Source: Hyaloraphidium curvatum SAG 235-1 (Eukaryota > Fungi > Monoblepharomycota). Taken from it: a stretch of DNA of 64,000 nt. Location of the stretch: the NCBI GenBank assembly GCA_025558095.1, contig JAIVFI010000014.1, positions 372,001 through 436,000 of the forward strand. The letters are read 5' to 3'. Both the position numbers and the translations under genes were made by a program. The notes under the pieces were generated by a model. The model was given only the letters and a program-made list of their open reading frames with translations, was not told the DNA's origin and searched no databases. Positions 6,913 through 53,498 of this stretch are shown piece after piece (positions within the stretch are counted from its first letter, which is position 1; the number at the start of each line of letters is the position of its first letter).

Positions 6913-9725
6913 CTAATCCAGCAGCGCACGGAACCGCTCCTCGATCTCCTTGTTCAGTTTTGCGTACCTAGGGGCGGATATGATGAGCTGGGATTCGGCG
7001 AAAGCCAGTGCACGCCACCAACCTCTCCTTGATGGCCTCCTCGCCGTCGTTAGGGTCCTGAGGTGCAAATATGCGTCAGAGATGTTCTGGCAAGGGATGG
7101 AGCGCGCGCCGCATACCTCGAACTTCATGGAGCTGAGCTTGTACATGATGTCAGACATGCTCTCCCGGATCCTGTTCCAGGTGATCTGGTTCGAGGTTGC
7201 CTCAACGGCGTGCGTTGCCGCGTCGTAGAAGGCAACGATGTTCTTCATCATCCCGGACGACTTGTAGAAGGGGCAGTAACGGTCGTAGGTCGAGTACCCG
7301 TTCTGCTGCAGGAAGTCCTCCTTGATGATCTTGGCAATCTCAAGGGTGATCTTGTCCGTCTCGGCGAGTGCGGACTGGAGCAACAGGCGTGAAACGAGAT
7401 CCCCCGATCCTTGGACGCACGACCAACCTTCCCGACAAGCTGCACGATTTCGGAAAGATCGTCTTCCATCTGCAGAATCTCCTTGAACTTTGTCCGGAGA
7501 GCAACGAACTCGGAGTCGAAGGTGTCGTACCAAGGCTCGAGGGCCTTGACGTACTTGGAGTACGAAATGTTCCAGTTGACGGAGGGGAAGTGCTTGCGCT
7601 GGGCGAGCTTCTTGTCGAGACCCCAGAACACCTGCACGATACTGAGGGTGGAGGAAGTGACCGGGTCCGAGAAATCACCACCGGGGGGCGACACGCTGCG
7701 CAAAGAGCCCATTAAGCGCGCACGACGGGACGTACGGCGGAACCGGACTCACGCGCCGACGATGGTAACGGTGCCGTTCCGCTGGGGGTTGCCCAGGCAA
7801 GTGACCTTTCCGGCACGCTCGTAGAAGGAAGCAAGACGAGCACCGAGGTACGCAGGGTAGCCCGAGTCTGGGAAGCTGCGTTAGAACCCTCGCCGCGGCG
7901 CCAGGGAGCGCAGCACCGACCAGCAGGCATTTCAGCGAGACGACCCGAGATTTCACGCAGCGCCTCGGCCCAGCGCGAGGTCGAGTCCGCCATCATGGCG
8001 ACGTTGAGCCCCTGATCACGGAAGTACTCCGACAGCGTGATACCCGTGTAGATGGAAGCTTCGCGAGCCGCAACGGGCATGTTACTGGTGTTGGCGACGA
8101 GAGTCGTGCGCAACATGATGGACTCTTCGCGCCCATCGACCGTCATCTTCAGCTCCGGGAAGTCCATCAGCACCTCCGCCATTTCGTTGCCGCGCTCGCC
8201 GCAGCCGACGTAGACGATGATGTCCGAGTTCGAGTACTTGGAAAGCGACTGCGAAATGACAGTCTTTCCGCACCCGAAAGCACCAGGGATGGCTGTCGTA
8301 CCGCCCTGGACGCAACTAAAGACACGGGTGGCGTTTAGAACACGCCAAGCAGGATCCCCGTTTACAACTCACGGGAAGAGCGCGTCCAGCACACGCTGTC
8401 CAGTCAGCAGCGGGTTGTCGCCCGCAAGCTTCTCGGCCACGGGGCGGGGCGAACGGACGGGCCACACTTGGAGGAGGGTGAACTTCTCCTTCTGGCCCTC
8501 GAACTCCGTCTCCAGGATGGTGTCCTGAATAAGGTACTCATCAGCGAAGCCCACGAAAGCGTCAGAGGGCACTGATCTTGCCTTGAGAGTGTACTGTCCT
8601 TTGGGAGCGATGTAGGTGATGGTGCCCTTGGCACGGGGGGGTAGCATGATCCGGTGCTTGACGAGGGTGTTCTCCTGCACCATGCCGTAGATGTCGCCTC
8701 CGACGATGTGGTCTCCGACCTTCAACAAGAGGAAACCTGTCAGGGTCTGTATCGGCCGGCCACATAGAGTGCCTTCACCTTGAAAGTGGTGGGTTCAAAG
8801 TCCCACGACACCGACTGATCCAGCGCGGGGGTGTTGATACCACGCGGAATATAGATACTCCCGGAGATGTCTTGGATAGCCTGGAGGTACGGATCAGATG
8901 GTTCGACCGAAGAGGTTGGCTTCTGCCTCCGACCTTCAGCGGGCGCTGGATACCATCGAAGATGGTGTCCATGATACCGGGTCCGAGCTCGACAGACAGA
9001 GGCTTGCCAGACTTGAGCACGGGGTCTCCGACAGTGAGACCGGCTGCGACGACAGCGTAAGGGGACCGCAGAACAAGATGCCTGCCCACGCACAAGTTTC
9101 CTCGTACACCTGAATCGTCGCCTTGTCGCCCTCGATCCTGATGACCTCACCGACGAGCTCATCGTGCCCGACGCGCACCTGGGATGTACGCAATCATTAT
9201 GGCCTTGGGTGGCAACGGAACCGAAAGGCGGCGCCGTACCAGCTCGTACATGGCACATCCCGTCATGCCCTCAGCCACGACGACGGGGCCTGACACCGAG
9301 AAGATGTACCCCAGCCTCGATGCCCTGTCCTCGTCCGCAATCTTGGGAAGGTCCCTCTTCGCATTCTCCAGAGCCCCGGCCTATGAAGGCCCGACAGCAC
9401 GTTCGGCAGGGTCCATGCGAGCGTCCACAAAGCAGCCGTGCGGAATCCCGACGGGAGGGGCGCGGGAGGAGAGCAGGCGACGAGGTGGCGCAAGTCGGCG
9501 TGCGGCGTCATGCACCCGGCGGCCAGCCGCAGCCACATCGCGATGATCGCCGCGGGGACGAAAGGCATCATCAGAGGAACGATTGCGACGAAGTAGAGCC
9601 GCCGATGAGCGCGTGCGCGAGCCGCCGAGGTGATATCAGCACCGCGATAAGGCGAAGTCGACCGGTGGGAGGGCAATGCCGTCAGGGCGCGTCCCCAAAG
9701 CGACGCAGGAGGAGAAACGCACCAT
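6913..9725 (-). CDS. VMA1: V-type ATPase catalytic subunit A (multi-exon, no intein)
   Basis: Spliced sequence [15 protein letters not shown]...[10 protein letters not shown]...GAFGCGKT...[13 protein letters not shown]...[11 protein letters not shown]...FRALLD. The first coding exon is the ATG alone at 9723-9725, followed by the donor GTGCGT. Confidence 0.97.
9381..9722 (-). other. VMA1 intron 1 (342 nt) with no internal AG
   Basis: Donor GTGCGT, acceptor CATAG, CTGAC at 9681-9685. No CT dinucleotide on the + strand between 9384 and 9722. Confidence 0.8.
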
Positions 9726-9881
9726 TTCGTTGCTCTGTCCCTGGAAAGCAAGGTCTGGAGCAACGATGCGACGAGGGGCGTACGTGCGCCACTTGACTGC
9801 CCCGTGAGAGTATAATAAGGCCCGATCGCATTGAATGCAGAAACCCCTACTTAAAATAAAAAAAACCCCACCCGCGTAAAA

Positions 9882-12077
9882 ATGGACGCGTTGCTGGTCT
9901 TTCTGCAGGCGTTCCCGAACCTATCGCGTGTTCCCGGCAAAGCTGGGGACCTGAGCGACGGCCTGGTGTTTGGAGAGGTCCTCAAGGCGATGTGAGAGGG
10001 AGTTACGCCAACGAGCGGAACGGGGACCCCACGGAGCTATCCTTCCAGCGATCCGAGATGGTTCGGAGGCCTGAAGCTCGAGAAGGGCGACAACTGGGTC
10101 ATCAAGTTCAACAACCTGAGTCCGTACCGGCCTGCTCGGTCGTTCAAGCTGCACGCTGAACCCCACGAACCCAGAGAAGCTCTTCAAGCAGTTGACGTCG
10201 TTCTACGAAGAGAGCCTATACCAGAACCCCAACAACCTGGATTCCGTGAACCTCACGGCCATAGCGAAGGAGAACGACGAGGTTGAACTGGCCAAACTCG
10301 GGTTCCTGGTCGTGGCCGCCGCCGTCCAGTGCGAGGGGAACCAGGCGTACATATCCCTCATTCGGTCGCTCGACGAGGCATCGCAGCACGCGATCATGCT
10401 GGCCATCGAGAAGGTGCGCACGTGTGTGCCCTGGGAGCTCGATCGGGAAGCCAAATTTTACGCGAGCAGGTAATGACGAGCCTGGGCGGTGAGGACGCTC
10501 CGAGTGGACAGTCAAGGTTTGGCGCAATCGCGATGCCGCGAGCGTGAGGATCTCTAAGCACGGTCAATGGCTCAGGTTGGATGGTCCCGATCGCGTTTCG
10601 TCGGACCGAGCACGGGGGGAAGGCGGAGAGGACAGCAGGGTGCTGCAAGAGAAGCTCGCTGCCGTGCAAGGCCAATACGTTGGTTAACGCGGACGTCTCC
10701 ACACTGGGCTTGGCGCTGAACAAGTGCTTCAGGAGGACGTCCTCGCCAAAGTCGGGCAACTGCAGCTTGAACTCAAGGAAGCCCAGCAAAAGCTGTCGGC
10801 ACGGACAGATGCGAGCAAATCGGAAGTCGTCTTCCGTGCAGAGATTGATGCCCTGAAGCGCAATCTGTTGGTGCTTCCGCGCAGCTCCGGAGTCGATCCA
10901 TAACTGTCTCCGGCTTTGCAGGGAGATGAACGAGGCGAGGAGGCACGAGGCGGAAGGGTTGCTTGCCGAGGAACAAGAACAGGTGCAGATGCTCAATCGG
11001 AGATTGGAGGAGGCCGCGCGAAAGGCCGTCGAGGCCACGTCCCTTAAGGATCAGGTGGACGAGCTCCGACAGGTTTCCGAGAAGCTCGCGAAGGCGGAAG
11101 CCACGATTGAAAAGTATCGGAAACGCGGGGACGAAACCGTTGAACTGCGCAGGCAAATCAAGGTCATCCCTTGCGCGCAGTGCTGTTCAGCACGACGCTC
11201 ACGTTCCCTCGCTATGGCAGCTCCTGGAGGACGAGAACCGGGCCCTTGTCGAACGCAGCGGGCACGTTGAGGACGAGTATCGCAAGGTTGCGGACAGCAC
11301 TTCGCTGGCGGAAACGGTCCGGGAGGAACTGGGAGCTCTGCAGCAAGCAAAGTCACGCCTCACGGCGGATTTGGACGCCGCCAACGCGAAGCTGCGTGAG
11401 GCCGAGGACCGTGTGCGGAAGCTGGACGACGTGTGCGCCGGCCAATTGGACCAGATCCACAGTCTGGAAGGTCAATTGAGGGAGCTCGAGCTCGGTGGTG
11501 GGTGGCATGGAATGTTCAGCTGATTCTAGTGCTTATGCAACGCGGTCTGCAAGGCGGCATTCCGCTGGATGATGGGATCCGCGAACCAGGGGATCAAATT
11601 CCCGACTCGCAGCTCCGCGGCGCGCTGGAGCGCGATCAGAAGGCGCTCGCGGCGGCGACAGACAAGGTTGCCGACCTCCAGAAGGCGCTAAAGAAGGCCA
11701 AAGAGTTCATCTTGAACCAGGATCGAGAGATCAAGGAGCTCAAGGCCTCCAAATCGGCCGACCAGGCGGGTATCGAAGCACATTCGGCCAGAGTCTGCCA
11801 CTCAACCGGCAAAATCCAGATTGCCGTCAGGCCATCCGAACTCCAGGAGCTCCAAAACCAGGTGGCGTCCAAGCAGGCCGAGATAGACCAAGCGACCGCC
11901 GCCTTGAGAGACATGAGGGCCAGCGCCCGACGCGAACAGAAGCTGCTCCTGACCGCCTTCTACGAGCTGGGACTGCAGCTCCAGAAGCGGAATCTCGCTG
12001 GGCTTGGTGCGGCCGGCTCATCGCCAACATGGCTGAACACGCACAGACAAGCGATCGATGCGCGCTACCGAAAATAG
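9882..12077 (+). CDS. HOOK-family microtubule/dynein adaptor (hook domain + coiled coil)
   Basis: DLSDGLVFGEVLKAIDPRWF...NWVIKFNNLKKL...LVVAAAVQCE; coiled coil; C-terminal REQKLLLTAFYELG...WLNTHRQ. Confidence 0.85.
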
Positions 12078-12100
12078 TCGCTCCGGAGCGCTTTAGAAGC

Positions 12101-13889
12101 CTAGAAGTACTTCTTGAGGACCGGCGTTGCCACCCGCACGAACATGCCCGGCGGCGGGATGGAGCCGTACGCGACTAGCTCTCCGTCGCGGTAGATCGCG
12201 TCCCGCTCCTGCCGGTTTGGTGAGAATAGACCATCTGAAACCGAGCCGCTTGCCCACCTCGCCGACCTTGCTTCGCAGCGCGGGATTCATTGTTGCAATC
12301 AAGACCTCAGACTCGAGGTCCCGTGTCATGGACCGTTCCCCATAGTTTGTGGAACCGATCAGCGTGATGCACGGGTCGGCTTCGTCGGCTCTTTGGGCCC
12401 AGAGCCCTGCATGGCATGAGACGCGAATGGCATTCACCTGCGTGTTGCCACCGCACCTTTGCAATGAAATGTCCACCCTTGCTTGATCCATTCCGACACT
12501 TCGATCCTCCCCTGTATCCCGCGGCCCTCAACCTCTTGCAAAAAGTTGCGCTCCAGCAGGCGATACGCATCGGGAATGAATCGGGAAACACCCTTCGATG
12601 CAAACCAGCCATTAGCCTGTAAGAGATCATTAGCCGCCGAACAAAGGCGCTGCCACGGTGGCTGTACCATTGGAGAAGCAGTCAGCACCGCGTAGCGCGC
12701 GCTTTCTGACGACATGATCAAGTCCACGAAACGGCGCGGAAAGTTGAGGTATCCCGACGTAAAATGGACCATCCAACCGCGTCCCATGCCCTGAGCAAAC
12801 GCAGCCAACAGCGCCTCGATCATTGCTTCGTCATCACGAATGCCAAGCTGCCCTTGCTGAACGTAAGGGACCACCAGAGTATCTCCGGGAGGCGTGTGCT
12901 GCCCTCCTTCCTTCAGGTTTTCCCTCAGCGCCGCCGAAGAATCCATCCACTTGCGCTTCAGGGCATCCAGCTGCCTGGCAGCGTGCGACTTGAATTCGGC
13001 TGGCGATCGAGAAGGATCAGGTCCCTTCGGCTCCAGCTCGGCCACCCCAAGTCCATATGAGAAGGAGGCCACGGTGTGAACGAGGTCGCTATAGAAATCC
13101 GCGAGACCCGCACACCCTTCGAAACGCATGTAGCGATCCTGCCTGTTCTCAAAGTAGTCCGTGTTTAGATTTGCTCTGGACGACGGCCAAGGACGTGTCA
13201 ATACCGCGAAAGCATGCTTACAGACCGAGCATTACCCGCTCAGGATAAGATCGTCGTCGAAGAGGTAGATCTTCATGTGCTGCAGGCCGAATGCTTCGCG
13301 GAACCTGTCCGGCAAAGCGGCCTTCAGCGCCGGGCCCAGAGCCGGCGTGTGGTACAATGCAACAGAAGCGCGACGAGGAAACTCCTTGGCCAGCGGTCGA
13401 AGCAGGGAAACCGAGCTTTCTCCGCCCTTGGCTCGCGTCCCGCGCAGAGCATCGATCAATATCTGCACCTCAAGGGATGGGTTCTCCGCCAGTGAATCCC
13501 GGAGAGTTTGGATCTGTGAATCCGTGCCATGAGCTCGTATTGAGGCAACGACCCAAGACATCGCACAAGCTCATGCTGCTCGCTACCGATGTACAGCGAA
13601 CTCAGGACGACGCGCTTCCGGGCTCCACGAATCCCCGCCTGGCGACAAACGGGTAAGCGTGATGATTTTGAAGCCGCAGGGCAAGACTCGCCTTCAGTGC
13701 AGCACAGAAATCTCTCGGGGTCGCGATGGGGGACACCTTGTCCCCGTCCAGCCCGAAAACGGGGCTCGATGCCCACGTTTCCACAGGAACGAGAGCCGCC
13801 GCTTGCCGGAGTTCATTCCCCGCCACGCGACTCCCGCTTTGGAAGCTACGCCTGCATACCCGCCTGAAGGCGGGAAGCAGCACGCGCAT
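12101..13889 (-). CDS. PGS1: Phosphatidylglycerophosphate synthase (mitochondrial, PLD family)
   Basis: VVLSSLYIG, LIDALRGTR, GLQHMKIYLFDDDLILSGANL..DYFENRQDRY, ANGWFASKG, WTFHCKGLW, IGSTNYGERS..RDLE. Confidence 0.92.
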
Positions 13890-13950
13890 CGGTGGTCTCA
13901 AAAGGGATTCGGGGGGCGTTTGCTTACGGCCTCGAGGCTCTCCGTGTCAC

Positions 13951-15065: not shown

Positions 15066-15118
15066 GCTTTCAACGTGTTGATCGATGCACCAGCAAACAT
15101 CGCTACCATCAATCTTCC

Positions 15119-16707
15119 CTAGATGAGATCCGCGACTGTAACCAACCTGTCAGACGCTGGCACCCATCCTGCAGGATCGAACTCACCGTTGATTGGCATT
15201 TCGTCAATCTGGGTCGAGTAGTATTGCTCTGCAACGCGGCGATTGTCAGACTCGACTTGTCGCGCCAAAGGGGCAACCCACCGATATCACGTAGGATCTT
15301 CACGTCGTCGCTCTTGACAAAGTTGATCGCCACACCCTTCCTGCCGAACCTGCCGGAACGCCCGATCCGGTGGATGTAGTTCTCACGGTTCGACGGCAGA
15401 TCGTAGTTGATGCTGCGACGAAGTCAGAACCGAAACGCCTCGGCTTCCTGCAAACAGCGCTTACACTAGCGAAACCTGCGCAACATCGATGCCGCGCGCC
15501 CAGACGTCGGTGGTGATCAGTACACGGCTCTTGCCCTGCCGGAACTCCTGCATGATGGCATCCCGTTCCTTCTGGGGCATCTCGCCGTGCATCGATGAAA
15601 CCGTAAAGTTGGCTTCCCTCATCTTTTCCGTCAACCAGTCGACCTGGTGGACCGCCGGTGAGCCAATGGAGGGCGGCCGGCTCGCAGCCTGCGAACCTTT
15701 CTCCGCGTATTGCAGAAGATCACCGCTTGCGTGATCGTCAACGTGTCGTAGAGGTCGCAAAGCGTGTCGAACTTCCACTCCTCCTTTTCGACCGCCACGA
15801 AGAACTGCTTGATGCCCTCGAGCGTCAGCTCATCGCGCTTCACAAGCACCCGGATCGGATCGGTCATGAACTTGGTCGTCATCTCCAGAACATCGTGCGG
15901 AAGGGTGGCGCTGACGAGCACGACCTGCGTGCTCGGCGGCAGGTAGCGGTAGATGTCGTAGATCTGCTCCTTGAATCCCCTCGACAGCATCTCGTCGGCC
16001 TCATCCAGGATCAGCATTTTGATGTGGCGAGTCCGCAAATGCCGCCGCCGGATCATGTCAAACACCCGTCCGGGGGTCCCGGACACCACGTGCTGACCAT
16101 AGTCCAGCTTTTTGATATCCTCCCCGACACTAGTGCCGCCAATGCAGGCGTGGCACTGAACGTTCATATAGTCCCCAAGGGCGAGCACGACGCTCTGAAT
16201 CTGCGTGGCCAGCTCCCGCGTCGGCGAGAGGACGAGAGCCTGGCATTCCCTCGATTGCGTGTCGATGTTTTGGAGGATGGCAATCGAAAAGGTTGCCGTC
16301 TTGCCCGTCCCCGACTGGGCTTGCGCGATGACATCGCGGCCCTTGATCATGGGAATAATGGACCGCTGCTGGATAGCACTGGGCTTCTCGAAGTCTGCAG
16401 TTCCACACCGGTGTCAGCCCGCGCGGGGGAGGGAAAGCAGAAACGGCCACCCACTGTACGCGTAGATGCCGCGCAGCAGATCCTCCTTGAGCCGCATGGC
16501 ATCAAAAGTGGGCACGACCTGCACATTCTCCGAGGTCTCAAATTCCTGGACGTGAGAGCCCGGTGGGAACGGGGGGAAAGGAAACCCGGGACGGCGCGTC
16601 AACCGCGAGCTCCCCAGACCGTCCTGCCACGCGATGCGAACCAGCTTCTCATCTTCCCCGCGGTCGATCTTCCCGCCGCCTTGCCTGGCGGTCCGTCCCT
16701 CGGCCAT
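15119..16707 (-). CDS. FAL1: DEAD-box helicase eIF4AIII (exon junction complex)
   Basis: [62 protein letters not shown] is diagnostic of eIF4AIII. Confidence 0.96.
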
Positions 16708-23159: not shown

Positions 23160-25206
23160 ATGGTCGGATATGGGCTCGCCGATGGGGAGACGGATCTTTT
23201 TGTCTCCCCAAGGGCCTCACCCAGTAGCTTGCTGGGAAGGAGGGTGCCCGGCGGGCGGTCTGCCGGGGTCGCAGACGCGTCTTCTCCGCGCACAAGGCAT
23301 TCGCCGGAGTCGGAACCCGTCTCACGCCCGGACGACGACGTTTTGAGAATGGTCAAGCTGGTGGCCCTTGATTCTGCATCCGAGTTCGACGCGAGGAACT
23401 CCCTCCTGGACGCGCGGGTGAGAACGCCGGTGGAGATTGCAGACGCGTTCTGAGCAGTCTGCGCCGTCGGAAGGCTTTCATGAGTCTTAAAGCAAACGAA
23501 CTGGACACGTACAACATGCTGAGTCGTGGGGAACAGCCTCGGCCCGCCGTTCCTGTTGGCGAAACCTCCAGCCCCGGGCAACTCGAGAGGTCTGCCTCAG
23601 CTGTGGCTTGCACTGCAGCGAGACCCACCTGACTCGGGCACGGATTTGCCTTGCCTACATCAGAAATCGGAAGCGGAAAGCTGCGGAATGCCAGCGTCGC
23701 AACCAGGAAATGCTCCACAGCGTCGAATCCGCCATCAACACCACGGCGCTGGCCATCGCCGCGGAGCTCAACCGACAGGCAGCAGAGGCCAGGATGAAAG
23801 CTGCAGCCGCTGAAGCTCAGAGGAAGGCCGAGCTGGACGCCGAAGCGAGCCGGAAAGAGGCCGAGCAGGCGGCAAAAGCCGCAACGGAAGAGGCCGAAAA
23901 AAGGGCCGCGGAAGCAGAAAGAGCAGCCGCGGAAGAGCTTCGGAAGGCTGCCGAAGCGGAAGCGAAGCGCAAAGAAGCGGAAGAGGCATTGGTCAAGGCC
24001 GAGGCCGACAATCAGCGCAAACGGGAGGAGGCCTTGCGGTCACAAGCCGCGGCCGAGAAAGCCTCTGCAGTCGCACCGGTAGCGCCTGGTGTGGATCCAA
24101 ACGCATCCCAGAAGAAGGGAGGCTCTGGGGAGGCTCAGGCAGCCGTTCAGAGCATCCCTGGGAATCGAACTACCCCCGCTGCACTGGAGCAAGCTGGGCG
24201 GTACATGCAACTTCTCAAGGTGCGCGCCTTCCGGCACTTTTGCTTTCGGGTGCCGACCTCCCCTGTGCAGGACATCAAAGCAAACGTTAGGCCGGCCGTC
24301 AAGGCCGACCGCCAGCTTAATCAATTCTGCTTCAAATCCCGGATGACCGTCACGCTCAGGATCGGGCAGATCACAAACAGCCGGACCCAGGTCAGGCGGA
24401 TCTCGAATGACCTCATCACGTTACTGGCGGACGCCGGTCGCGTCTCTCCGCTGGCGCGCCAGTGGGTCATGGATTTCCTTGCCAAGCAAATGGCGAACCA
24501 GGCCGAGAAGGAAGTAGCGGTCTTCAAGCCGCTGGCCTTCCCCATGGCGCGAGTCGCGCAGAACGTGGTCGCCAAAAGCCCGGAGTTTTGCGAGATCCTC
24601 CTCGGCCGCCTCATGAAGCGAAACCCGTACCTAATTCCCAACTACCCGATTCGGCTCAAGGTGCTTCGCATGGACCTGGCCGGCGGCAATGGCTTACACG
24701 CCTCCTCCAGAGCGAGTCGTTGGACGAGTACTGTAAGCGGCTGGCCATGAAGAAGCGGGACGATGAGTGGGAGAAGGAGGCGCACTACGAGGAAAGGCTC
24801 GGCGGAACCGCCGCTCTTTTCGCAGGTCAGTACCACAACGTCGGTCGCTGTTCTGCCCTTGACAGATCATGCTCCAGCCTTCATGCAAACACTGCCGGAA
24901 GGAGCACCAGGAGGGTGCCTGACAATGGCGGACGCTTGGACGTGGCTGGCGCGGCTGCTCAATCTTCCGCCGCGAAAAATCACTCCGCAGCTGATCCTCA
25001 CATTCCTCGAGGTCGCGGGCCCGGAGCTTCTCCGAACGTATCGCAAGCAGGCCACGAAGCTGCTTCGGTTCATAGCCGAGAAGTGCCTGCCGCAGATGCC
25101 GAAGGAATCGGTGGCCGCCACGACCCGCCTCCGTCTGCATCTGGAGGGGACGCGGAACAAGGTCCATCTGCCCGAGCCCGACGGATTCCGATTTTCCGAA
25201 CCGTAG
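23160..25206 (+). CDS. GLE1: mRNA export factor Gle1
   Basis: Coiled-coil N-terminus; RIGQITNS, LAKQMANQAEKEV, Y.ERL.G..ALFA, AWTWLARLLN, FLEVAG...YRKQATKLL. The start codon is uncertain. Confidence 0.85.
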
Positions 25207-25233: not shown

Positions 25234-28200
25234 TCAAGTCGGCGACTGGCTGCGGCGCGGCATGCTCATGGGCGATGCGCTCCTGTTGCCGAGCGATTGG
25301 ACCGTTTTGTTGTTCACGGCAATCGTGAGCCTGTTTGAAGCGGGAGCAATGTCGTACACGCCCCCGAGCTCGGTGACGTAGAACTGCACGTCGGCGAGGA
25401 GCCGGTCTTTGCCAGCGCTCGACGTGACGGGCACGTTCTGGATCTCCTCTTCGAGCCGCTGGTTGTAGATGTCGGCGACTTGCGTGACGATTTGCTGCGC
25501 GGAACAGTGAGCTGCGGTTGCCCGCGGATGATCGCATCGCTTACCCGGAGAATGTCCTCCGACAGGTATTTCGACAGGACGCGGTGTAGCGTGACCAGGT
25601 CCTTGACGAGGCCCAGCATGTAGGCATTCGGCTTCCCCTCCGGAGCGGGCTGCGCCCACGTCGTAGCGTGCATGGCCTTGATGTGGATTGCCAGCCGATC
25701 GCTCATGATGGAAACCAGTTTGGCGTAAATCTGTTTCTGGTGCTCCGTGTAGTCCTGGTGATAAAGGGTCAGACACCGAAATCGCCCTGGTAGATTTCTA
25801 CCTACACCCAGCTTGCGATCGAAATCATTCAAAAGGACCATAGCTTGCCGCCCGTTTAGCTTGCTCTGGAGATTTTTGCGGATGGCCGGTATCAGAGCAA
25901 TGACGATGGCCAGGCTCTGCGAAGCCAGCGCTGCACGCAAATAGAGTCAACCACGTGTGCAGGCCCACAATTAAGCTCGTTCCCACCAAGGTGCTTGGCC
26001 GTGATGTTCTTGAGTCCCAGCGAAGCCACTGCACCGGCCCCGAGAATGACCTGGCAGATCCTTGAGTTGAAGAGCTGGAGGCGAGGTCAGGCAAGGCAAA
26101 ACCGAACTTGCGAAGCCCCTCTACAAACCGTCAGGATCTCCAGCAGGTCGTGAATCACCTCCGTCACGGCGATCGGCACGTCGTCGAGACATTGCAAGTA
26201 GTCCGCCAGCATCTTGACGAATATGAGAACGCACCCGACGGCATAGAACCGCTGCCCCCCGACGACGAGGAACTTGGTGCTGTTGCCGGAATCCGCGCCG
26301 AGAGCGGCGCCTGCGTCGTCCTCGCTCATCCGCACGGCGGACTCCTTGGGGAGCGAGGACACGGCCTGCGTGGGAGATCCGCTCAGGGCATCCGCGATTG
26401 CCTGAAACTCGAGGGGCACGGCGGCCTGGGTCCACGGCTCCGACTCGATCAGCAGCGCCAGCTGCTTGATCTTCTCCTCGTGGAAGTTGCGCAGGAACGA
26501 GCGGGACTGGTTGACGATGGCGCCCTTGAGGCCCAGAGTCGGCTTCCCGCAGACGGCCTCGGTGGCGGCGACAAAGGTCCAGGTCGCCGTGTACAGCCTC
26601 CGAAAGTCCTTGGCGTTGAGCTGCGCGTTGTGTTCGGACCGCACGGAAAGGAGCTTGGCGCAACGCGTGTGCGAGAGGTCGGCCAGGGCAGCAAGGATCG
26701 ACGACGCCTCCTTGGATGCCTGAGCCTGCAGGTCCGAGACGGTCCTGGCAACGGCCTGGGTCTGCTCCGCGCCTGCTCCCCCGCCAGACGGTTTGGCCAC
26801 GGCCCCGTTGGGACGCGCCTCGCCGTCAGCCCCCTGTTCCCCGCCGCCCTCGGGAACGTTGAGCGCGTCCACCTCGTCCATGTCGTCGGCGGCCCCATCG
26901 GGCCGCTGGCCGTCCTCGGCCGCGGGGGGCAGATCCCCGACGGGGTTGGGCGGCTGGAACTGCTCCAGGTCGAGCACGAGGGCGTCCCCGCCGCTGCGCT
27001 CGTCCACCTCGCCAATCTCGGCCACGATCGTCCGCAGTGCGAGCGCCGTGCGCCGCAGAAAGACCAGGTGCGACGCGTAGACGCGCGTCAGCAGCGAAAA
27101 AAAGGCGTCGAACGTCATTGTCCGGAGCTGCGTGGCGAGAGCGCTCTTTCCAGGCGCCGGCGGCCTATCCGCGGTGCCGGCAACCAGGCGGTAGTACTCC
27201 TTGGTCGCGGCCTTCAGGTCCTTCCTCGCCGTCTCCTTGAACGTCCTCATGGCGGCGACGACCTTGCGGGTGTGCACGAGTCCACGCAGCGTGGGCGAAA
27301 CACGGTCCGCCAGCGGTCCGACCCCGCCTCCCTCGGCAGCTAGCGCCGCGGCATCGGGCGGCGGATCGGCCGCGAGGCGGGCTGCAATCTCGGGTGCCGC
27401 AGCGAGCTCCGCAGGGTCCTTGACAAAGGAAGCCAGCACGCCGACGAACTCGGCCTCCATCACAAGCCCAATGGTGCGGTAGACTTCGGACAGCTGGCCG
27501 TAGGTATGGGCAATGGCCTTGACGGCACGGTAATCCAGGTCCGCCGCCTGCTGCGGCTGCGACTGGTCCGCGCGCGGCGTCGTCGCAGCCCGGGCCGTCT
27601 GGATGGTGGCAAAGGCGTCGCCGATGAGGTCCAGGGCCCCGACGTAGTCGTTCTGGCCCAGCAGCAGCTGCACCATGGGCTGGGTCTGGCGCAGCTCGCC
27701 GATCAGGGTCAGGGAGCGCAGCAGCTCGGCCAGGTTGGCGCGCCTGCGCTTGAGCTTGACCACGCGAAGGCCCTGCTTCGACGTCGACTGCGCCAGGCGG
27801 GCCAGGCGGGCTCGGACGGCCGAGATTTCCGAGACGCACTCGAGCGTGTCGGCGTGCAGCGACTGCAGGTTCGAGAGCGCGGCGAAAAAGGAGGACGAGC
27901 GCCGCGAGATCTCCTTGACGAGGTGGATCTCGACCGTGTCGAGGTAGTGCGACAGCTTCTCCTGCAGCACCGACGACGCGTAGACCAGCGGGTCGGGCGC
28001 CTTGCCGGCCGGTAGAGCCCCCGCGGCGCCGCCCTCGCACACGACGGCGAAGGTGTGCGGGTTCTCGAGCGAGAACCCCGGCTGGAAGAAGACCGGCGGC
28101 ACGGTCGACAGCGCGGGGCCACCGGGACCCGCGGCCGCGTTCCTGGCGCGCTGCAGCGCGTATGCATCGCGCCTGGGGGGTGCCGGGGCCAGGGCAGCCA

Positions 28201-28498
28201 GCTCGGGCAGCGAGCCCAGCGAGCCCGACGAGGCGGGGCCGCCCAGCGCGGGCGCGCCCTCGAGGCCGGCGGCGCGGTTGAACTCGTAGCGGCCGTAGGC
28301 GTCGCCGACGAGCGCGATGTACGGCTCGAAGTCCGCGTTCCGCACGCGGCGGATCGGCGCGGGGGCGGCGTCGGCCGGGGGCGGCGGGCGGCGGTCGGGC
28401 GCGTTGCCCGCCGTGACCGACGACACGGCGTTGCGGCCGATGTCGGCAAACGTCCACGCGCGCTCGCTGGACACCGCGGCCTCGAACGGGTTCGACAT
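25234..28498 (-). CDS. VPS54: GARP complex subunit Vps54
   Basis: LSTVPPVFFQPGFSLENPHTF, LQEKLSHYLDTVEIHLVKEISRRSSSFF.AL, LFNSRICQVILGAGA...GLKNITAKHL. Confidence 0.93.
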
Positions 28499-28511
28499 GG
28501 CTGCCGGACGA

Positions 28512-28527
28512 CCCCCCCCCCCCCCCC
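28512..28527. repeat. C16 homopolymer in the 80-nt VPS54/SAS6 divergent spacer
   Basis: Read directly from the sequence. Confidence 0.9.
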
Positions 28528-28578
28528 GATCCCTTTCCCGTTCACCCACTGGGACAGCCGTCCCCTCCCCCTCGCGAA

Positions 28579-30725
28579 ATGCCCCCGCTGTTCGCCAAGC
28601 GCGTGCCGCTGCTGGTGCGCGCGTCGGGCGCCCCGCCGCTGCCGCTGCCCGACGCGCAGAATGCGCCCGCCGCGCCGTTCGCCGCACGCGTGTCGGCGCA
28701 GCTGGCACCCGCCCGCGGCTCGTTCGGCCCCACCGCAGCACCCGCGCACCTGCCGCCCTCGCCCGCCTCGCCCGCGCCGTCGCCGGCCTCGGTGCCGCCC
28801 CCGGACGCGCCGTGCGTCGAGCACAGGCACCCCGGGATCACAGTCACCATGGCCCTGTCCGAGCGCGGCCAGATGCTGGCCGCAGGCGACTCGCCCCTGT
28901 CCTACCCCGCAAAACCGTTTGCAAAGGTTGCCCGCACCGGCTGCCGCTGTCTGCTGGACCGGGGCTCAATCCCGCTGCAACTCGCAGACCCTCACAATCA
29001 CCCTGACCGACGACGACAACCCGTTCTTCCTGCACGTGGCAGAGATCGGGGACGACGACTACCAGCTGCTGCGGGCGCAGCAAAACCTGCTCGTCGACTT
29101 TTCGCAGTTCCCCTACAAGGTCATTGAGCTGTTTGAGCTGTGCCTCGGCGAGGCCAGGGAGGCCTACCCAAAGTGGGTGCCCGAACACCCCCGGCGACCA
29201 CGGTCTCTCAACGTGCAACTCCTGCGCAGGTTCACGGCCCAGCTCGCGACCGACCACTCGTCGCGCCAGTCGACGCTGAGCATCGTCGAGAGCAACAGCT
29301 TCCGCAACATCGTGCACGTGGCGCTGCAGATGACGCCCGCCACAGACGCGATGCTGAAGCAGTTCCTAGCCGACTCCATCCGCGACTACAAGGTCCGTAG
29401 GGCGCGAAAAACCTCGAAGCTCACGCTCACGCTCCCGTTCCTCCAGCGCCAGCTCGCTTCCATGCAGTCCGAGCTCGCCTCCTCCCGTGCCCGACTGTCG
29501 ACGTCGATCGAGGAGTCGGGCTCCGTCGCCTCGCGCCTGACCCGGGACCTGGATCGGGAGCGGGCCGAGCACGCGGAGCAGGTCGCCGCGCTGCGGGCGG
29601 CACACGCGGACCAGATCGAGCGCGAGCGGGACGAGCGCGCGAGGGAACGGGAGGCCGCGAGGCGGGAACGAGAGCGGGATCGGGAGGAGGCGGAGGCCAG
29701 GGTCGAGGGACAGGCATGTCTCTTCCTTGCGGATCTGGCCCCAGGGAAGCTGACCCCGTTTGCCCTCCAGATAAAGTCGCTCACGACGCGGCTTTCCTCC
29801 CTGACGGCGGATCTGGCCGCCGCTTCCTCGCGGGCCGCGCTGCTCGACGCCTCCCTCGCGTCCACGCAGAAGCAGCTGGACGGCGCCCTCGCGGACCTGG
29901 CAGCGGCCCAGGCCGATGCGGATAGATACCAGGCCGAGGCCAGGCGCGCGGTTCGGGAGCGCCAAGAGACGGCGGAGGAGCTGGAAAGCGCGAGGGAGAA
30001 GGCGAGGGCGCTCCAGGCCCGGCTGGGCGAGGCCGTCGAAGCCGTCCGCGGGAGCGAGGGCGTTGCCGGCACCGCAACCGAGGAAAAGGTTGGGAATTGC
30101 TTTGCTCGCCGACCTCAGTAGGCTCACCGACGACCGGCTGCAGACCCAGCTTGCCGCCGCGCTGGCCGCGGAAAAGGTGCGCTGCGCCCGGCTCGAGGAG
30201 GACCTGGCCGTGCGCACGCAGGAGGTCTCCAAGGCCAACGACATCATCCGCCGGCTCCAGGCCGACCTGCGCGCCACAAAGACCAAGACAAAGACGAGGA
30301 ACACGGCCATCGTCCAGCAGGAGCGCGCGCTCGAGGAGCGCGAGGAGGAGGTGCGGGCCCTCAAGGAGGAGGTGGAGGAGCTGCGCTCCAAGCTGGATGC
30401 CGCGGAGGAGTCGCGGCGGAGGGCCAAGGGCAAGGTGGCGGACCTGGAAGGCCAGCTGGAGCAGGCCAAGAGGCAGCTGGATGACAAGTCGAACGGTGGG
30501 CCCCACGCTTCCCGAACGAGTCAACTTCACCCTAAACATCTCTCTCCCGAACCAGTGATTGCCTGGCTGCACAAGCGGAGCGCGGGCGGCGACCCGGGTC
30601 TGAAGGAGCGGACAGCGAACAGGGTCGGCGGCCTCGCGCACTCCGCGGGGACAGAAAACGTCCAGCCGACCCTGGGCGCGGGCATGGGACTCGACCAACG
30701 ATATGTACCGCGGTTCCTGGATTGA
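28579..30725 (+). CDS. SAS6: Centriole cartwheel protein SAS-6
   Basis: LTDDDNPFFLH....DDDYQLLRAQQNLLVDFSQFP, L.IVESNSFRNIVHVAL, coiled coil with EVSKANDIIRRLQ, VIAWLHK. Confidence 0.9.
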
Positions 30726-41907: not shown

Positions 41908-43686
41908 ATGGCGGCCTCGGGCGGCTCGCCCGACCTCGAGCTGCTGATCAGATCGGCGGCCGATGCGCTGGGCATCAATCTCGCCGCCGGGGCCGCGTCG
42001 GCCGCGCCGGGGGATTCGCCGCTGCACGTTCTCCGCGGCGACCTCGAGTACCGGCTGAAGGAGCTCGTCAATGTGGATAGGCGTTTCCTGGGCCTATCGC
42101 GGCCTCGTATGGGATCTTTCTGACCGGAATTTCGCCCTCGTTGCTCCTTCCGATGGGTCTGCTGCGGGATCGTCGCGTCGGGACACCACCGGACATTGTC
42201 GTGACCGCACATAGGACGCTCACAAGTTCATGAGACACTCCAGGAGGAAACGGTTGACCGCTGCCGACATCAATAATGCGCTGCGCATGAGGAATGCCGA
42301 GGTGCGCCCGTCTCCACCGCGATTGGGCTGTGGAGGGACCTTGAGCCGCGATGGCCGCCTCCCAGCCCTTGTACGGTTTCGGCGCCCCTTCCGTGGAGCC
42401 GCCTGCCGCGGTAGCCGAAGGGAAAGAGGGAGAGCAGGTCTACCGGGTCCAAGACGAGGAAATCAACCTGGATGACCTCATCAACACCCCGCTCCCGGCC
42501 GTTCCCCTGGATGTCGTATACACGGGTGGGTTTCCGGTCTTGCTAGTGGAGTATTCGTGCCTCATCTTTCGCGGCATGGACAGCTCACTGGCTGGCCGTC
42601 GAGGGCGTTCAACCTGCCATTCCCCAGAACCCGTCCCGTGGGTCCTCTTCCGCGCTTTGTCCGATATACCTTCCCGACCAACGTCTCGCAGCTGCTCGAC
42701 CGTCAGAAAAAGCACCCGAAGTCCCGCTGGTCAAGCACGTGCTGTCGCGCTCCTTGATGGTGTACCACGACAAGATGACCGCTGCTCTCCTGGGCGACGA
42801 CCCCACGTTGAAAAACGAGGCATTCAAGCACCTGGCATCGGACACTGGGATCACAGAGCTGGCGCCTTACTTGGTGTCGATGGTAGGGGAGAAGGTGACG
42901 TCGGGCATCGGGAATCTGGACCTGCTGTGGCGCATGATGAAGCTCGTAGAGAGTCTGCTGGACAACCCGGAAATCGACCTGGAGCCCTACGTCGGTGTTG
43001 TGCCGGGCCTTCGATTGGTCTTTGATATTGACGGGACCGGCGCCGTTCTGCAGATCCACCAGCTGATGCCGACGGTGCTCACCTGCCTCGTCGGAAAGCG
43101 GTTATCGCCCCCGGAGGAGGACCATTGGGCCTTGCGGCGCCACGCCGCGAAGCTCGCCGCACGGATATGTCGCGATTACGGCGGCAAATACGCCAGTCTG
43201 CAGCCCCGGACGACGAAGACTCTGCTCCGTGCCTTCTTGGACATTCAGAAGCCGCGCCCAACCCACTACGGTGCGGTCATCGGACTTGGGGAGCTGGGGA
43301 AGGAAGCTGTCCGGCTGCTGGTTCTGCCGAACCTTCCCGTTTACGCTGTCGGGCTTCGGGAGACTTTGCCTGATCCCGCTGCGCCGCCGAGCGAAGGCTT
43401 TGACGAGGCTCGGGAGGAAGCCAGGAAGGTGTTTGAAGCGGTTGTGGTGCGCTCGTCGTTTGGCCGTATCTACGTTGCGGGCGGCTGATCGCCGCTTCCA
43501 CCGCAGACGGTTGCCGGCAACGTCATGAAGGATGATTTGGACCTTCCGACGGCGCCGCAAGACGTTCGGCAACATCTTCTGGACACGTATGGCGACTATT
43601 TTGGGGAGGCGCTCTATCACATGGTGCGTGGGCAGGGAAACGGACTGGATTCGAAGGGCCAAAACGTGGACATGATGGAGCATTGA
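41908..43686 (+). CDS. TAF6: TFIID/SAGA subunit Taf6
   Basis: DLEYRLKE...KFMRHSRRKRLT..DINNALR..N.EPLYG, HWLAVEGVQPAIPQNP, HQLMP.VLTCLVGK, THYGA..GL. Confidence 0.93.
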
Positions 43687-44946: not shown

Positions 44947-46217
44947 ATGGCGCGGTCAAACGCGCCGGACCAGATCGTGATCCACCCGCTCGTCCTGCTC
45001 TCGGTGGTGGACCACTACAACCGCGTCGCCAAGAGCACAAAGAAGCGCGTCGTCGGCGTGCTCCTGGGCCAGTGGAAGGGCCGCACCGTGAACGTCGCCA
45101 ACAGCTACGCCCGTGGGCCTGCCACGATGTGCGTCCGGTGCCGTGCGGGCTGACGCGCCCGGGTGTTTTCGCAGTGCCGTTCGAGGAGGACGAGAAGGAC
45201 CCGTCGGTATGGTTCCTGGACCACAACTACCATGAGGCGATGTACGACATGTTCAAGAAGGTCAACGGTTGGTCGCAACCCGGGGCCCGGACGTGGAGGA
45301 CCGGGAGTGCTCACCGGGCGGCCCGGGCACGCTCCCGACGCGATCTACGCAGCCAAGGAGAAGATGGTCGGCTGGTACCACTCGGGCCCCAAGCTGCGAG
45401 CGTCCGATCTGGAGATCAACGAGATGTTCAAGCGGTATACCCCGAATCCCGTGCTGGTCGTCGTCGACGTGAAGCCGAAGGACCTGGGCATCCCGACGGA
45501 CGGCTACTTTGCGGTGGAAGAGGTCCACGACGTGGGTCCGAGCTCGCCGACGGATCTCGACCGGGGCTCACTCTGTTTCGCAGGACGGGACGGCCACGAC
45601 CAAGACCTTCAACCACGTGCCCTCTTCTATCGAGGCGGAGGAGGCAGAAGAGATCGGCGTGGAACACCTGCTCCGGGACATCAAGGACAACGCGGTCGGC
45701 ACCCTGTCCACGGAGATCACCAACCAGCTGAACTCGCTCAAGGGCCTGCACATCCGGCTGGAGGAGATCAAGGACTACCTCGGCCGGGTCGTTGCGGGCG
45801 AGCTCCCAATCAACCACCAGATCATCTACAACCTCCAGGACATCTTCAACCTCCTCCCGAATCTCAACGTCGCGGACCTCGCCCGGTCGTTCTCGGTGCA
45901 GACCAACGACCAGATGCTCATCATCTACGTGTCGGCCCTCATCCGGGCCGTGATTGCGATCCACAACCTCATCAACAACAAGGTGAGCAACCAGCGTCCG
46001 GCAATCCAAGAGCGTTCCGCCCGTTTGGGCACTGTGATGATCACGCCGATGCTGACTATGTCCGCCCCCGCAGATCGAGTTGAAGGAGTCTGAAAACAAG
46101 CCCGACGAGGCCAAGGAAAAGGCGAAGAAGGATGCAAAGGCGGAAGACGCGGGGAAGAAGGAGGAACCGAAGGAGTCCGACAAGAAGGCCGAGGGAGAGC
46201 GAAAGTCCGACCAATGA
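44947..46217 (+). CDS. RPN8: 26S proteasome lid subunit Rpn8/PSMD7
   Basis: [64 protein letters not shown]. Confidence 0.97.
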
Positions 46218-46779: not shown

Positions 46780-46879
46780 GTCCGTGAAGCGTGAAGTCGG
46801 TTGCGTGACCGCCGGCTTGCCCCAGCGTGCGAGTCGCGCGTTAGCGCGCAGCAACATCTCACTCTTTCCTCGCACAAAG

Positions 46880-47428: not shown

Positions 47429-47548
47429 CCCGTGGGAGAAGGAAGATCGCGGCCGACCGGGATGGCTATCGTATTCAGCTTACAACATGGAAATGTGCGA
47501 AATGTACAGGTGTCTAGATCAGGGTATCGTCAACCACGCGGCCCGCGT

Positions 47549-50500: not shown

Positions 50501-51509
50501 TTCTTGTCCTTGCCCTCGATAGCCGCCCCGATGGCGCTCGAGAGCTTCTCGTGGCTGACTTTGTCACCCTTGTCAATGACGTCGAGGATCCTGTCGATGG
50601 CAAACTTCTCCATGACAAGGCCCGAGAGCTTGGCGGCCATTCGAATGGATTCCTGGGAACGGGCGGCCCGTGAGAATGCTGTGCGCACGCCACTCAAGCA
50701 GAGTAATCCCACCAGCGCATCCTCGTCCTTGACAGCGAGAATCCCCGAAAAACCCATGCTGACATCCACGGTGTCAAGCGTGACACCGGAGGAGGACAGG
50801 AACTTCTGCCACTCCTTGATGACAAAGTCGTCCTTCGCGACGATGCCCACGCGAGACTAGGCGGCCCGCGTCAATCGCGGACGACGCTTGACAACAGCCT
50901 ACTGCCCACCTTCTCGCCCTCGCCCTGGATAAGCCGGAGGAAGGCCTCGAACGCAGGTTGGTTCTCCGCCGCGAAGCTCTGGTCCTTCTTGTCCTTCTTG
51001 TAGGCCAAGATCTCGAGGTCCAGCGGGTTCTCGACGTCGGCAGCCTTGAGCTGCTGGAGGACCTCGGCTGCGCGAGACGTAAGCCCACCGGCCGGCGCCC
51101 GACGGCGGACTGCTGCGGACCTTTCTTCGGGCTCGTCAGGAAGGCGACCTTGTCCTGGGTGAACAGGATCGCGGTCTCGTTGAACTCGAACCCCACCAGC
51201 CAGATCTGGAGCGCCGTGGTCTTGACGTAGCTGTTCGCATCCTCGTCCGTGGTCGGCCCGTTGACGATGAGGAGCCTGTCGGCGTTCTGCCAATCGTCGC
51301 CCACGCGGCCGGCCTGGCCCGATGCAAACAACAAAGGGGCGTCGCGAGAGATCGAAAGACGTGGATCCAGGGAGAAACCGGCGGCGAGGGTCCGGAAACG
51401 CGTCGTGAGCACTGGGACGGGCGGCCCAGCCGGCGAGCGGCACCTTCCACGCGGAAAGCAGGCCGCGCGCGCGCCTGTGGAACTGCTTCGGATTGAGGGT
51501 GACGGACAT
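47549..51509 (-). CDS. SPT16: FACT subunit Spt16
   Basis: [68 protein letters not shown], and an acidic tail. Confidence 0.97.
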
Positions 51510-51650
51510 CGCGGCGTCGCCGGTGCCGACTGTGGAGGGAGCGAAGGGGGGGGCCGGTGATGGGTGAGCCCTCGAACGCGCGGCAGGCGAGATCTCCAAG
51601 GCGAACACGCTCCATCTACATCGCCCGCTTCGGACACTTACGGCGCCTCG

Positions 51651-52156
51651 ATGAGCTCCGCGGGAGCAAAAGGCGCGTCGGCGGGGGCGCAGGCACCTGC
51701 TGCCGGGAAGGCCGGCCCGCCGACGCCGCAGGAAGTGCTGCAGCGCGCGTGGAAGGGCTACTCCCAATCCACCCCGAACCGGCTCAAGGCCGTGGACGTT
51801 TATCTCGTGTTTCTCATGATCACCGGCGCGGTGCAGTTCCTGTACTGCCTGCTGGTCGGCACGTACCCGTTCAACTCGATGCTCGCCGGCTTCATCTCCA
51901 CGGTCGGGAGCTTCGTCCTTGCCGGTTGGCGGTTCCTCGCTCTCGCTCGGGGACTTTTGCTGATTGCGGATGAACCGCCACAGTCTCGCTGCGGATGCAG
52001 GTCGCGGCCCCGGGCGACAGCAAATGGACCTCGCCCGAGGCGTAGGTGGCGTGGATCCGGCCGCGAGCGACGCTGACCGCCGCCTCCAGGGCCTTTGCCG
52101 AGTTCCTGTTTTGCACCGCAATATTCCAGATCTTTGTCGTCAACTTCCTGGGTTGA
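51651..52156 (+). CDS. OST2: Oligosaccharyltransferase subunit DAD1/Ost2
   Basis: [12 protein letters not shown]...[33 protein letters not shown]...AFAEF....VVNFLG*. Confidence 0.95.
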
Positions 52157-52257
52157 CTGGACAGACCTCCCTCTAGCTTATACCATGGTGTAGATACGAC
52201 CTCCCTAATCCAAGCACCCTCCCATGCCAGAGCGGCACCGTTCTTCCGGACGACGTC

Positions 52258-52537
52258 TCATCGTTTGGCGTTGTGCGCCTTGAGGGCCTTTTCCATGCAC
52301 TTCACGTAGGGTCCAAGGAACTCGGAGCACTCCGCGAGCGCCTTCCGTCCCACATCGGCGTCCTGTCATCAATTGGGCAATCAATCGGCGTGCAAAGTAC
52401 CCGGAAAGCGGCCCCACCTGGCCGTTGGCCTTGCCCTTGACCGAAAAGCACGTCAGGAAGTCGTCCGCCTCGGTCTTGCACGCGCTCAGGCGCAGCGGGA
52501 AGAAATCCGGCAGCCGCTCCGGCGGTGCCGCGCTCAT
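52258..52537 (-). CDS. Small twin CX9C (CHCH) protein, likely in the mitochondrial intermembrane space
   Basis: Two exons: MSAAPPERLPDFFPLRLSA-CKTEADDFLTC-FSVKGKANGQ|DADVGRKALAE-CSEFLGPYVKC-MEKALKAHNAKR*. Confidence 0.7.
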
Positions 52538-52750
52538 CGCCAACGGGAGGGTCCGGAGAATCGGGAGTAGCTCAGAGGTTACCGAACGACGCTGCAGCAG
52601 GAACCGGAGTTGGATCGAGGTAAAAATCCTTTTAAAATCAGCCTCAGGGTTTGATTTTAGGTTATTGGCGGGGCCCGCCAAGCCCGAGTCCCGCATCACA
52701 ACTCTTCCCTCTCTTTCCTCCTCTCGTCGTCCTCTCCTCTCTCAGAAACC

Positions 52751-53498
52751 ATGTCGAAGCGGGGCAAGTTGCAGCTCTCGTCTGCATTTCGCGCTCCGCT
52801 TACCGGCGTACTGCTGCTTCCTGGCCTCGATTCTCCCCTCGCGCCGGCGACTGGTCCCTCCCTGCGGTTCCGCCCTTGCTCCTGCTCGTGACCTCCTGCC
52901 CTTCTCCGCACATTCCGCTCCCTGTTCTCCTTCTCGCGATTGCTTGCTGGACGGCGGGGTGTGCAGGCGCTGGTGTTTCGGGCAACAAGTACCGGATGAC
53001 CCTCGGTCTCCCGGTCGGCGCGGTCATGAACTGCGCCGACAACTCGGGGGCCAAGAACCTGTACATCATTTCGGTCGTGGGCTTCGGTGCGCGCCTCAAC
53101 AGGCTGCCCGCCGCCGCTGCCGGCGACATGGTGCTCGCGACGGTGAAGAAGGGGAAGCCGGATCTTCGCAAGAAGGGTACGCGTCTCGGCGGGCGGCCCG
53201 GGCGTTTGGAGGACGGAAGCTCATGGTCCCTGCGCGACAGTGATGCCCGCGGTCGTCATCCGGCAACGGAGAGCATGGAGGCGGAAAGACGGCGTGTTCC
53301 TCTACTTCGAGGACAACGCCGGCGTCATCGTCAACCCGAAGGGCGAGATGAAGGGCTCGGCCATCACGGGACCCGTGGCGAAGGAGTGCGCGGACCTGTG
53401 GCCCAAGATCGCTTCCAGGTTTGTGCTCTCGATGTGAGAGCAGCTTCGAGTACTCAGACTCTGACACGTGCGCCCTCAGCTCCGGCACCGTCGTCTAA
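52751..53498 (+). CDS. RPL23: 60S ribosomal protein uL14 (L23)
   Basis: MSKRG|[32 protein letters not shown]...[34 protein letters not shown]. Confidence 0.98.

Follow-up and report, generated by a model that had tools for sequence, protein, structure and literature searches.

Long introns with a donor-side branch-like motif and an AG-free 3' tail in housekeeping genes of the fungus Hyaloraphidium curvatum

In vertebrates a small number of introns, most of them regulated, have a distant branch point followed by an AG exclusion zone, whereas yeasts bridge long branch-to-acceptor distances by RNA structure. Human introns of this kind are spliced to the first AG, which ends the AG dinucleotide exclusion zone (Gooding et al., 2006; PMC1431707). 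Such introns represent ~0.6% of human introns, are often located beside regulated exons and have spacers that were reported to be unstructured (PMC3239191); the scanning model of Smith et al., 1993 is cited in the same work. The vertebrate OGDH intron 4a, like the alpha-tropomyosin type, has its branch points as close as 25–41 nt to the 5' splice site, with ~280 nt of AG exclusion zone after them, and the short donor-to-branch distance in OGDH blocks splicing to the adjacent donor, which results in mutually exclusive exons (PMC7969005). Among fungi, distant-branch-point introns have been described in Saccharomycotina (COF1, UBC13), where the branch-to-acceptor distance is 50 to >150 nt and yeasts reach 150–470 nt; stable stems in the spacers bring branch site and acceptor closer together and mask silent AGs, and arguments against scanning are given in the same study (PMC3239191). 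AG avoidance has also been reported for the 3' segment of Drosophila short introns (PMC10946897). Here we describe long introns of Hyaloraphidium curvatum SAG 235-1 in which a branch-like motif is located close to the donor and is followed by an AG-free tail up to the acceptor. Six of these interrupt VMA1, RPL23, TAF6, SPT16, eIF4AIII and RPN8 in a window of 64 kb (the whole stretch, positions 372001–436000 of contig C14, JAIVFI010000014.1) from the 31.9-Mb genome of 55 contigs, and the analysis was extended to 264 kb by adding the 200 kb upstream of the window on the same contig.

In each of the six introns the A of a branch-like motif falls between +38 and +51 (the first base of the intron being +1), and no AG is present after this motif until the acceptor, which lies 39–301 nt further on; internal AGs are found upstream of the motif only. 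The longest tail is that of VMA1 intron 1 (9381–9722, reverse strand; 342 nt, GTGCGT...TAG), which follows an exon 1 consisting of ATG alone (9723–9725) and has no internal AG and 14 GA dinucleotides. Its motif is CTGAC at 9681–9685 on the reverse strand (A at 9682, +41, 301 nt from the 3' end, 6.6 bits). RPL23 intron 1 (52764–52966, forward strand; 203 nt, GCAAGT...CAG) is preceded by a 13-nt first coding exon, has AGs at +4 and +10 only and carries CTTAC at 52799–52803 on the forward strand (A at 52802, +39, 164 nt from the 3' end, 6.1 bits). TAF6 intron 1 (42073–42214, forward strand; 142 nt, GTGGAT...TAG), with nine GA and a sole internal AG at +7, carries CTGAC at 42120–42124 on the forward strand (A at 42123, +51, 91 nt from the 3' end, 8.5 bits), and SPT16 intron 1 (51314–51443, reverse strand; 130 nt, GTGCCG...CAG), with a sole internal AG at +31, carries CTCAC, as part of GCTCAC, at 51405–51409 on the reverse strand (A at 51406, +38, 92 nt from the 3' end, 7.3 bits). 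The two shortest are eIF4AIII intron 1 (16546–16641, reverse strand; 96 nt, GTTCGC...CAG; AGs at +17 and +31), with TTGAC at 16598–16602 on the reverse strand (A at 16599, +43, 53 nt from the 3' end, 6.2 bits), and RPN8 intron 2 (45268–45352, forward strand; 85 nt, GTTGGT...CAG; AGs at +30 and +39 only), with CTCAC at 45310–45314 on the forward strand (A at 45313, +46, 39 nt from the 3' end, 7.9 bits). A preliminary description of the window, based on the sequence alone, had pointed out these six introns. Its motif positions and its AG-free tails were found as written, and so were five of its six pairs of coordinates; RPN8 intron 2 ends at 45352 and not at ~45351. It had missed two details, namely the GC donor of RPL23 intron 1 and an extra CTCAC in eIF4AIII intron 1. 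The donor is GT in the other five introns and the 3' ends are all YAG or TAG. The RPL23 donor GCAAGT (52764–52769) corresponds to the usual GC-AG consensus, and a GC donor (GCGAGT) was also seen in CRM1 intron 1.

Removal of each of the six introns restores a reading frame that is collinear with homologues, as seen from profiles, PDB alignments and homologue N termini, for which exons were searched singly against homologues, profiles and structures. The Pfam profile continues gap-free across TAF6 intron 1, from position 41 to position 43, and across SPT16 intron 1 position 18 is followed, by extrapolation, by 19. At RPN8 intron 2 profile position 82 is followed by 85, the gap being taken up by a codon split by the intron and by the first residue of exon 3, which was not aligned. 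VMA1 exon 2 was aligned (PDB) to yeast Vma1 from residue 2 and an in-frame TAG is present at the acceptor, so that the upstream coding sequence can be no more than the ATG. Similarly, RPL23 exon 2 was aligned (PDB) to uL14 from residue 5–8. Around the eIF4AIII junction chytrid homologues read DEKL-(V/E)FETS(E), without the 32 read-through residues. The 96 nt of this intron are a multiple of 3 and hold no in-frame stop, hence retention would add 32 residues without truncation. Judged by these comparisons, the six were confirmed as real introns of the U2-type spliceosomal class (GT-AG or GC-AG) with the boundaries given above.

The normal geometry of this genome was determined from 261 predicted introns of at most 75 nt, with a median length of 58 nt. 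Their branch consensus, obtained with an iteratively refined 9-nt matrix, is g-C-T-(G/C)-A-(C/T). In the short introns obeying the first-AG rule the distance from donor to branch A was 39.4 +/- 3.0 nt, and that from branch A to the 3' end had a median of 16 nt (5–95% 11–27, maximum 35). The first AG at least 8 nt past the branch A was the acceptor in 187 of 191 short introns. A branch-like site of at least 5.3 bits was present near the acceptor (last 45 nt) in 74% of short introns, and the segment from branch to acceptor consisted of A 9, C 45, G 21 and T 24%.

We then defined a donor-side class as introns of at least 85 nt in which a site scoring 5.3 bits or more lies at +38 to +51 and the acceptor is the next AG past this site. 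Seventeen introns in the 264 kb belong to this class (~5% of predicted introns), with 39–301 AG-free nucleotides from motif to acceptor. Their donor-to-motif distance was 42.2 +/- 3.2 nt, compared to the 39.4 +/- 3.0 nt of short introns, in agreement with the earlier statement that the motif sits at the short-intron distance from the donor. Besides the six introns, the class contains ATG8 intron 2, introns of CCT4, a mitochondrial carrier (two introns), eIF4A, a cyclin and a MAT1-like gene, and others. The junctions of 9 of the 17 are backed by collinearity with homologues or profiles, including those in ATG8, CCT4 and the mitochondrial carrier, for which profiles were used. The acceptor is in all cases the first AG lying at least 8 nt past the motif. 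Four class introns have an AG 2–7 nt past the branch A and none beyond, which would fit the blind zone of ~8–12 nt after a branch point (PMC7969005). The class was also said to consist mostly of first introns, and 12 of the 17 were predicted to be first introns as compared to 99 of 351 (28%) overall; the CCT4 intron, at least, is not truly first, which shows that some 'first' labels are errors of the gene finder.

The position of the motif was compared with shuffled sequences. When long introns were picked by their tail alone (no AG from +50 or earlier to the end, n = 23), 17 had a donor-side motif where 2.4 were expected (P ~1e-12). Conversely, among 43 long predictions with a donor-side motif 17 had AG-free tails, compared to 5.5 expected from their own composition. 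On the acceptor side, the last 45 nt held a site of 5.3 bits or more in only 1 of 16, compared to 74% of short introns (P ~2e-8). In most of these introns the donor-side motif has no branch-like competitor. The data thus support that the layout exceeds chance and is non-random.

These introns are probably best read as distant-branch-point introns with an AG exclusion zone, in which the donor-side motif would be the branch site that is used and the first AG would then be chosen over a long range. They would be ordinary U2-type introns with a special geometry: the branch would be formed at gCTGAC, CTCAC or CTTAC ~40 nt past the 5' splice site, as far from it as in the 50–65-nt introns of this genome, and the extra length would sit between branch site and acceptor. 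After the first catalytic step the spliceosome would pick the first AG at least 8 nt downstream. Any AG in the spacer would capture splicing and would be removed by selection, and this would account for the A-poor, C-rich AG exclusion zone of 39–301 nt. The products of the first step would be small lariats with long tails. The preliminary description had further proposed that the distance from donor to branch may be set by intron definition and that the interval between the two splicing steps may leave room for regulation.

Several observations weigh against this interpretation. The gene models were home-made and the sample comprised 264 kb with 351 predicted introns, and several long predicted introns with internal AGs turned out to be false. 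Additionally, the donor-side layout was found in 9 of 11 verified long introns; the other two, ATG8 intron 3 (124 nt, profile position 90 then 91) and CRM1 intron 1 (122 nt, with the GC donor mentioned above), have the ordinary layout, with CTAAC 22 nt and CTGAC 24 nt from the end, respectively, and are lengthened on the 5' side. Given these two introns, a rule for all long introns, as it had been proposed, was too strong: the donor-side layout is that of the majority of verified long introns without being universal. The remaining points of this kind concern the site of branching and the base composition, and are given below with the explanations they bear on.

Branching might take place near the acceptor at a weak, non-consensus site, in which case the +40 motif would be incidental, a relic or an early non-catalytic U2-binding site. 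Weak acceptor-side sites do exist, such as the 3.0-bit TGCCGAACG in VMA1 intron 1, 22 nt from the acceptor, and in approximately one quarter of short introns, too, no site reaches 5.3 bits. Moreover, the orthologous introns of both relatives that we identified branch, by motif, 32–39 nt from the acceptor. We nevertheless consider this explanation unlikely, as it leaves unexplained the 17 of 23 motifs at +38 to +51, the scarcity of good sites in the last 45 nt (1 of 16) and the tolerance for AGs before the motif and not after it. The second motif of eIF4AIII intron 1, CTCAC, is located 7 nt from the 3' end and thereby nearer to the acceptor than the branch sites of ~95% of short introns (5th percentile, 11 nt).

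The relatives were found as two Logan contigs from two different species, L022 (SRR23967301) and L023 (SRR26194948), which are syntenic with the window over 7–26 kb and have exons 70–85% identical to those of the window. Their eIF4AIII intron 1 and VMA1 intron 1 are at the same codon positions and both 190 nt long, and the ATG-only first exon of VMA1 is conserved (9723–9725 in the window, 4856–4858 in L023). The 190-nt eIF4AIII intron of L022 has no in-frame stop and its length is not a multiple of 3. The orthologous introns have 4–8 AGs in the first 85 nt (5' half) and, as further points against a donor-side branch, a strong CGCTGAC on the acceptor side, 39 or 32 nt from the acceptor, and an A-poor AG-free zone of ~105 nt that reaches ~65–75 nt upstream of this CGCTGAC. 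Since the zones of the relatives begin well upstream of the motif, an AG-free C-rich zone does not by itself locate the branch point. Alignment of the VMA1 introns of the focal genome and L023 gave no convincing homology, and a search for orthologous introns of the relatives in SPT16 gave distant fragments only. As the orthologous introns have acceptor-side motifs, the donor-side layout is lineage-specific, and no conserved ruler fixes it. The contigs of the relatives have ~52% GC compared to ~60% in the window; the focal genome has become GC-richer, and this may be linked to its A-poor introns.

The lack of AG could also be a by-product of composition, if 5'-proximal introns were A-poor and C-rich for other reasons (promoter-proximal, expression-enhancing) and AG was absent by chance, without any special 3' search. 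The tails consist of A 8, C 44, G 25 and T 23% (67% pyrimidine), which matches the branch-to-acceptor segment of short introns, and low A goes a long way towards accounting for the lack of AG in the shorter tails. The shuffle probability of zero AG was 0.2–0.87 for many tails, and VMA1 (<0.001) and TAF6 (0.02) were the only single tails to be significant alone. AG-free runs of at least 100 nt are frequent genome-wide, and those of at least 150 nt (31) are little commoner than CA/TG-free (21) or GT/AC-free (23) runs. The first AG is at least 50 nt away after 8.8% of random branch-like 9-mers, and at least 100 nt away after 0.7%, and its distance after combined donor and branch modules equals that after random branch-like sites. 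The enrichment of predicted first introns points in the same direction. An AG-free tail alone is therefore weak evidence, as such runs are not unusual genome-wide. However, the 17 tails when pooled (1362 nt) have no AG where 26.7 are expected and 49 GA, 1.8 times the expectation, whereas AG upstream of the motif is near expectation (12 vs 14.9, 0.8). A depletion of AG beyond low A thus holds for the pooled tails and not for most tails taken singly. Over both strands of the 264 kb there is a single AG-free run of at least 300 nt, which coincides with VMA1 intron 1, and 14 of 149 AG-free runs of at least 100 nt end precisely at an acceptor, compared to 1.1% expected. Base composition, moreover, cannot place a branch motif at +40. 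The argument for the donor-side branch rests on the coincidence of AG-free runs with acceptors and with the +40 motif, and we find a purely compositional origin quite improbable.

It is very hard to believe that the layout is an artefact of the gene models (wrong bounds, hidden microexons or false first exons), even though the gene finder erred elsewhere (VPS54, GLE1) and the first exons are tiny (3, 13 and 66 nt), given that an internal acceptor or microexon is impossible without an internal AG, that profile and structure alignments are gap-free across the junctions, that only two of the six lengths are multiples of 3, one of them going with the in-frame TAG end and one with 32 residues absent from homologues, and that the ATG-only exon of VMA1 is conserved in a related species.

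The gene models were obtained with a self-trained two-strand gene finder that used a 3-periodic 4th-order coding model, donor (12 nt) and acceptor (10 nt) matrices and an intron base-composition term, and that contained neither a branch-site term nor an internal-AG rule. A one-strand version was dropped, as it merged genes and followed antisense shadows, and so was a heavy penalty on long introns, which over-split genes and forced a wrong VMA1 model. The gene finder gave exactly the ends of the preliminary description for VMA1, eIF4AIII, SPT16 and RPL23 intron 1, and placed RPN8 intron 2 at 45268–45352, one base past the end given there. In total, five of the six introns were recovered with the accepted ends. 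TAF6 was split by the gene finder, and its intron 1 was set by hand at 42073–42214, matching the earlier coordinates. Automatic splitting of AG-containing long predictions into canonical short introns and in-frame exons worked for 2 of 62. Because the outer ends of these predictions were often wrong too, they do not tell what share of long introns is ordinary, and the proportions of long-intron layouts given here rest on the eleven homology-checked junctions. Rejected as model errors were a 200-nt 'intron' of VPS54 (25755–25954) and a 151-nt 'intron' of GLE1 (24840–24990), each of which hid ~40 profile positions, and a 187-nt prediction in VMA1 (8747–8933) that holds a block conserved in a relative. 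A 181-nt prediction in TAF6 (42526–42706) reads as two short introns flanking a 54-nt exon with in-frame HWLAVEGVQPAIPQNP. Each of these four stretches, taken for a long intron by a model of coding potential, contains a small exon with a short intron on either side. Small exons of 50–100 nt seem to be common here and easily missed by models of coding potential.

We also looked for RNA structure that could shorten the distance between motif and acceptor. No excess stability was found in comparison to dinucleotide shuffles (VMA1 intron 1, z = 0.4; 17 tails, mean z = +0.47), and the effective branch-to-acceptor path of the tails was like that of shuffles, without any distance-shortening fold; RNA structure was therefore rejected as a distance-shortener. 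In the minimum-energy and centroid folds of VMA1 intron 1 the segment with the branch motif, CCUGACGGCAU (37–47), pairs with 323–333, just before the acceptor. This pairing encloses the entire tail as one domain, with a stability no better than that of shuffles. Silent AGs masked in the yeast manner were not found, the tails being without any AG. There was no Rfam match at the gathering score anywhere in the window, and small RNAs hosted by the introns were rejected as the cause of the extra length on this ground. An origin from repeats or introners was rejected as well, the VMA1 5' region being single-copy in the genome.

In comparison to the described systems, the introns resemble the mammalian type in their long AG-free stretch from a far-upstream branch site, here known from its motif only, to an acceptor that is the first AG, and in a pyrimidine-rich spacer without stable structure. 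The tract is C-rich here and U-rich in mammals. Unlike the ~0.6% of human introns, the class accounts for ~5% of predicted introns and 9 of 11 verified long introns, and is found in housekeeping genes. The resemblance to OGDH lies in a branch site, again by motif, no more than ~40 nt from the donor, with an AG-free pyrimidine tract of great length after it, and VMA1 intron 1 (+41, 301 nt) has nearly the same geometry. In contrast to OGDH, ~39 nt is the normal working distance of short introns here, and the introns are spliced to that donor. No duplicated or alternative homologous exon pair flanks the six introns; the flanking exons are single and collinear with homologues. With the introns of Saccharomycotina they have in common that they are fungal and have a long branch-to-acceptor distance, but their spacers are AG-free and fold no better than shuffles. 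Ordinary short fungal introns have the same branch consensus, first-AG rule and A- and AG-poor 3' segment, which in the class measures 39–301 nt instead of a median of 16 (maximum 35). From these features the introns appear to work like the vertebrate type and not like the yeast type, and to differ from the former in that they are common and constitutive, rich in C and spliced to the adjacent donor. The underlying principle is already known from human AG exclusion zones (PMC1431707) and from OGDH (PMC7969005); in the literature, of which our coverage was incomplete, no description of it as a regular fungal architecture was found.

A more tentative proposal, which goes further than the reading of distant branch points itself and which we hold to be possible and somewhat doubtful, is that the spliceosome of this lineage commits to the branch by a ruler of ~39–42 nt that stems from very short introns, and then carries out an unstructured search for the first AG over up to 300 nt. 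Introns could then grow only on the 3' side, under genome-wide selection against AG and A, and this arrangement would have arisen after the split from the GC-poorer relatives.

The window contains the housekeeping genes VMA1, eIF4AIII, VPS54, NOT1, TAF6, RPN8, SPT16 and RPL23. The closest protein matches of eIF4AIII are from chytrid fungi, and it has a local sequence variant in common with Gonapodya; on this basis the organism was taken to be an early-diverging zoosporic fungus. A protein with an N-terminal SAS-6 domain (centriole cartwheel) adjoins VPS54 (28016–30722, forward strand, and 25237–28837, reverse strand, respectively); their long open frames overlap on opposite strands in a stretch of 65–72% GC, and the presence of SAS-6 points to a flagellated (zoosporic) lineage. 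A LINE-like retroelement is located at 876–3755 (forward strand), with a long open reading frame that holds endonuclease/exonuclease/phosphatase and reverse-transcriptase domains. The gene finder predicted an identical 244-nt 'intron', equal in length and in AG and GA counts, at 4732–4975 and ~7 kb upstream, which suggests a direct repeat of ~7 kb around the LINE-like element.

For genome annotation, these introns mean that gene finders tuned to short introns or to branch sites near the acceptor mis-model such first introns and their tiny first exons. If the reading of distant branch points is true, an early-diverging fungus would routinely use the vertebrate-like unstructured solution in VMA1, RPL23, SPT16, TAF6, CCT4 and ATG8, over distances of up to 300 nt, with close relatives of ordinary layout available for comparison. 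It would offer a small-genome system for studying how the active site of the second step finds a far AG, and the minimal donor-to-branch distance and the evolution of intron length under a first-AG rule would become testable. If the ruler also proves true, the fungus would provide a natural system for long-range 3' splice-site choice and possibly for second-step control in 5'-proximal introns.

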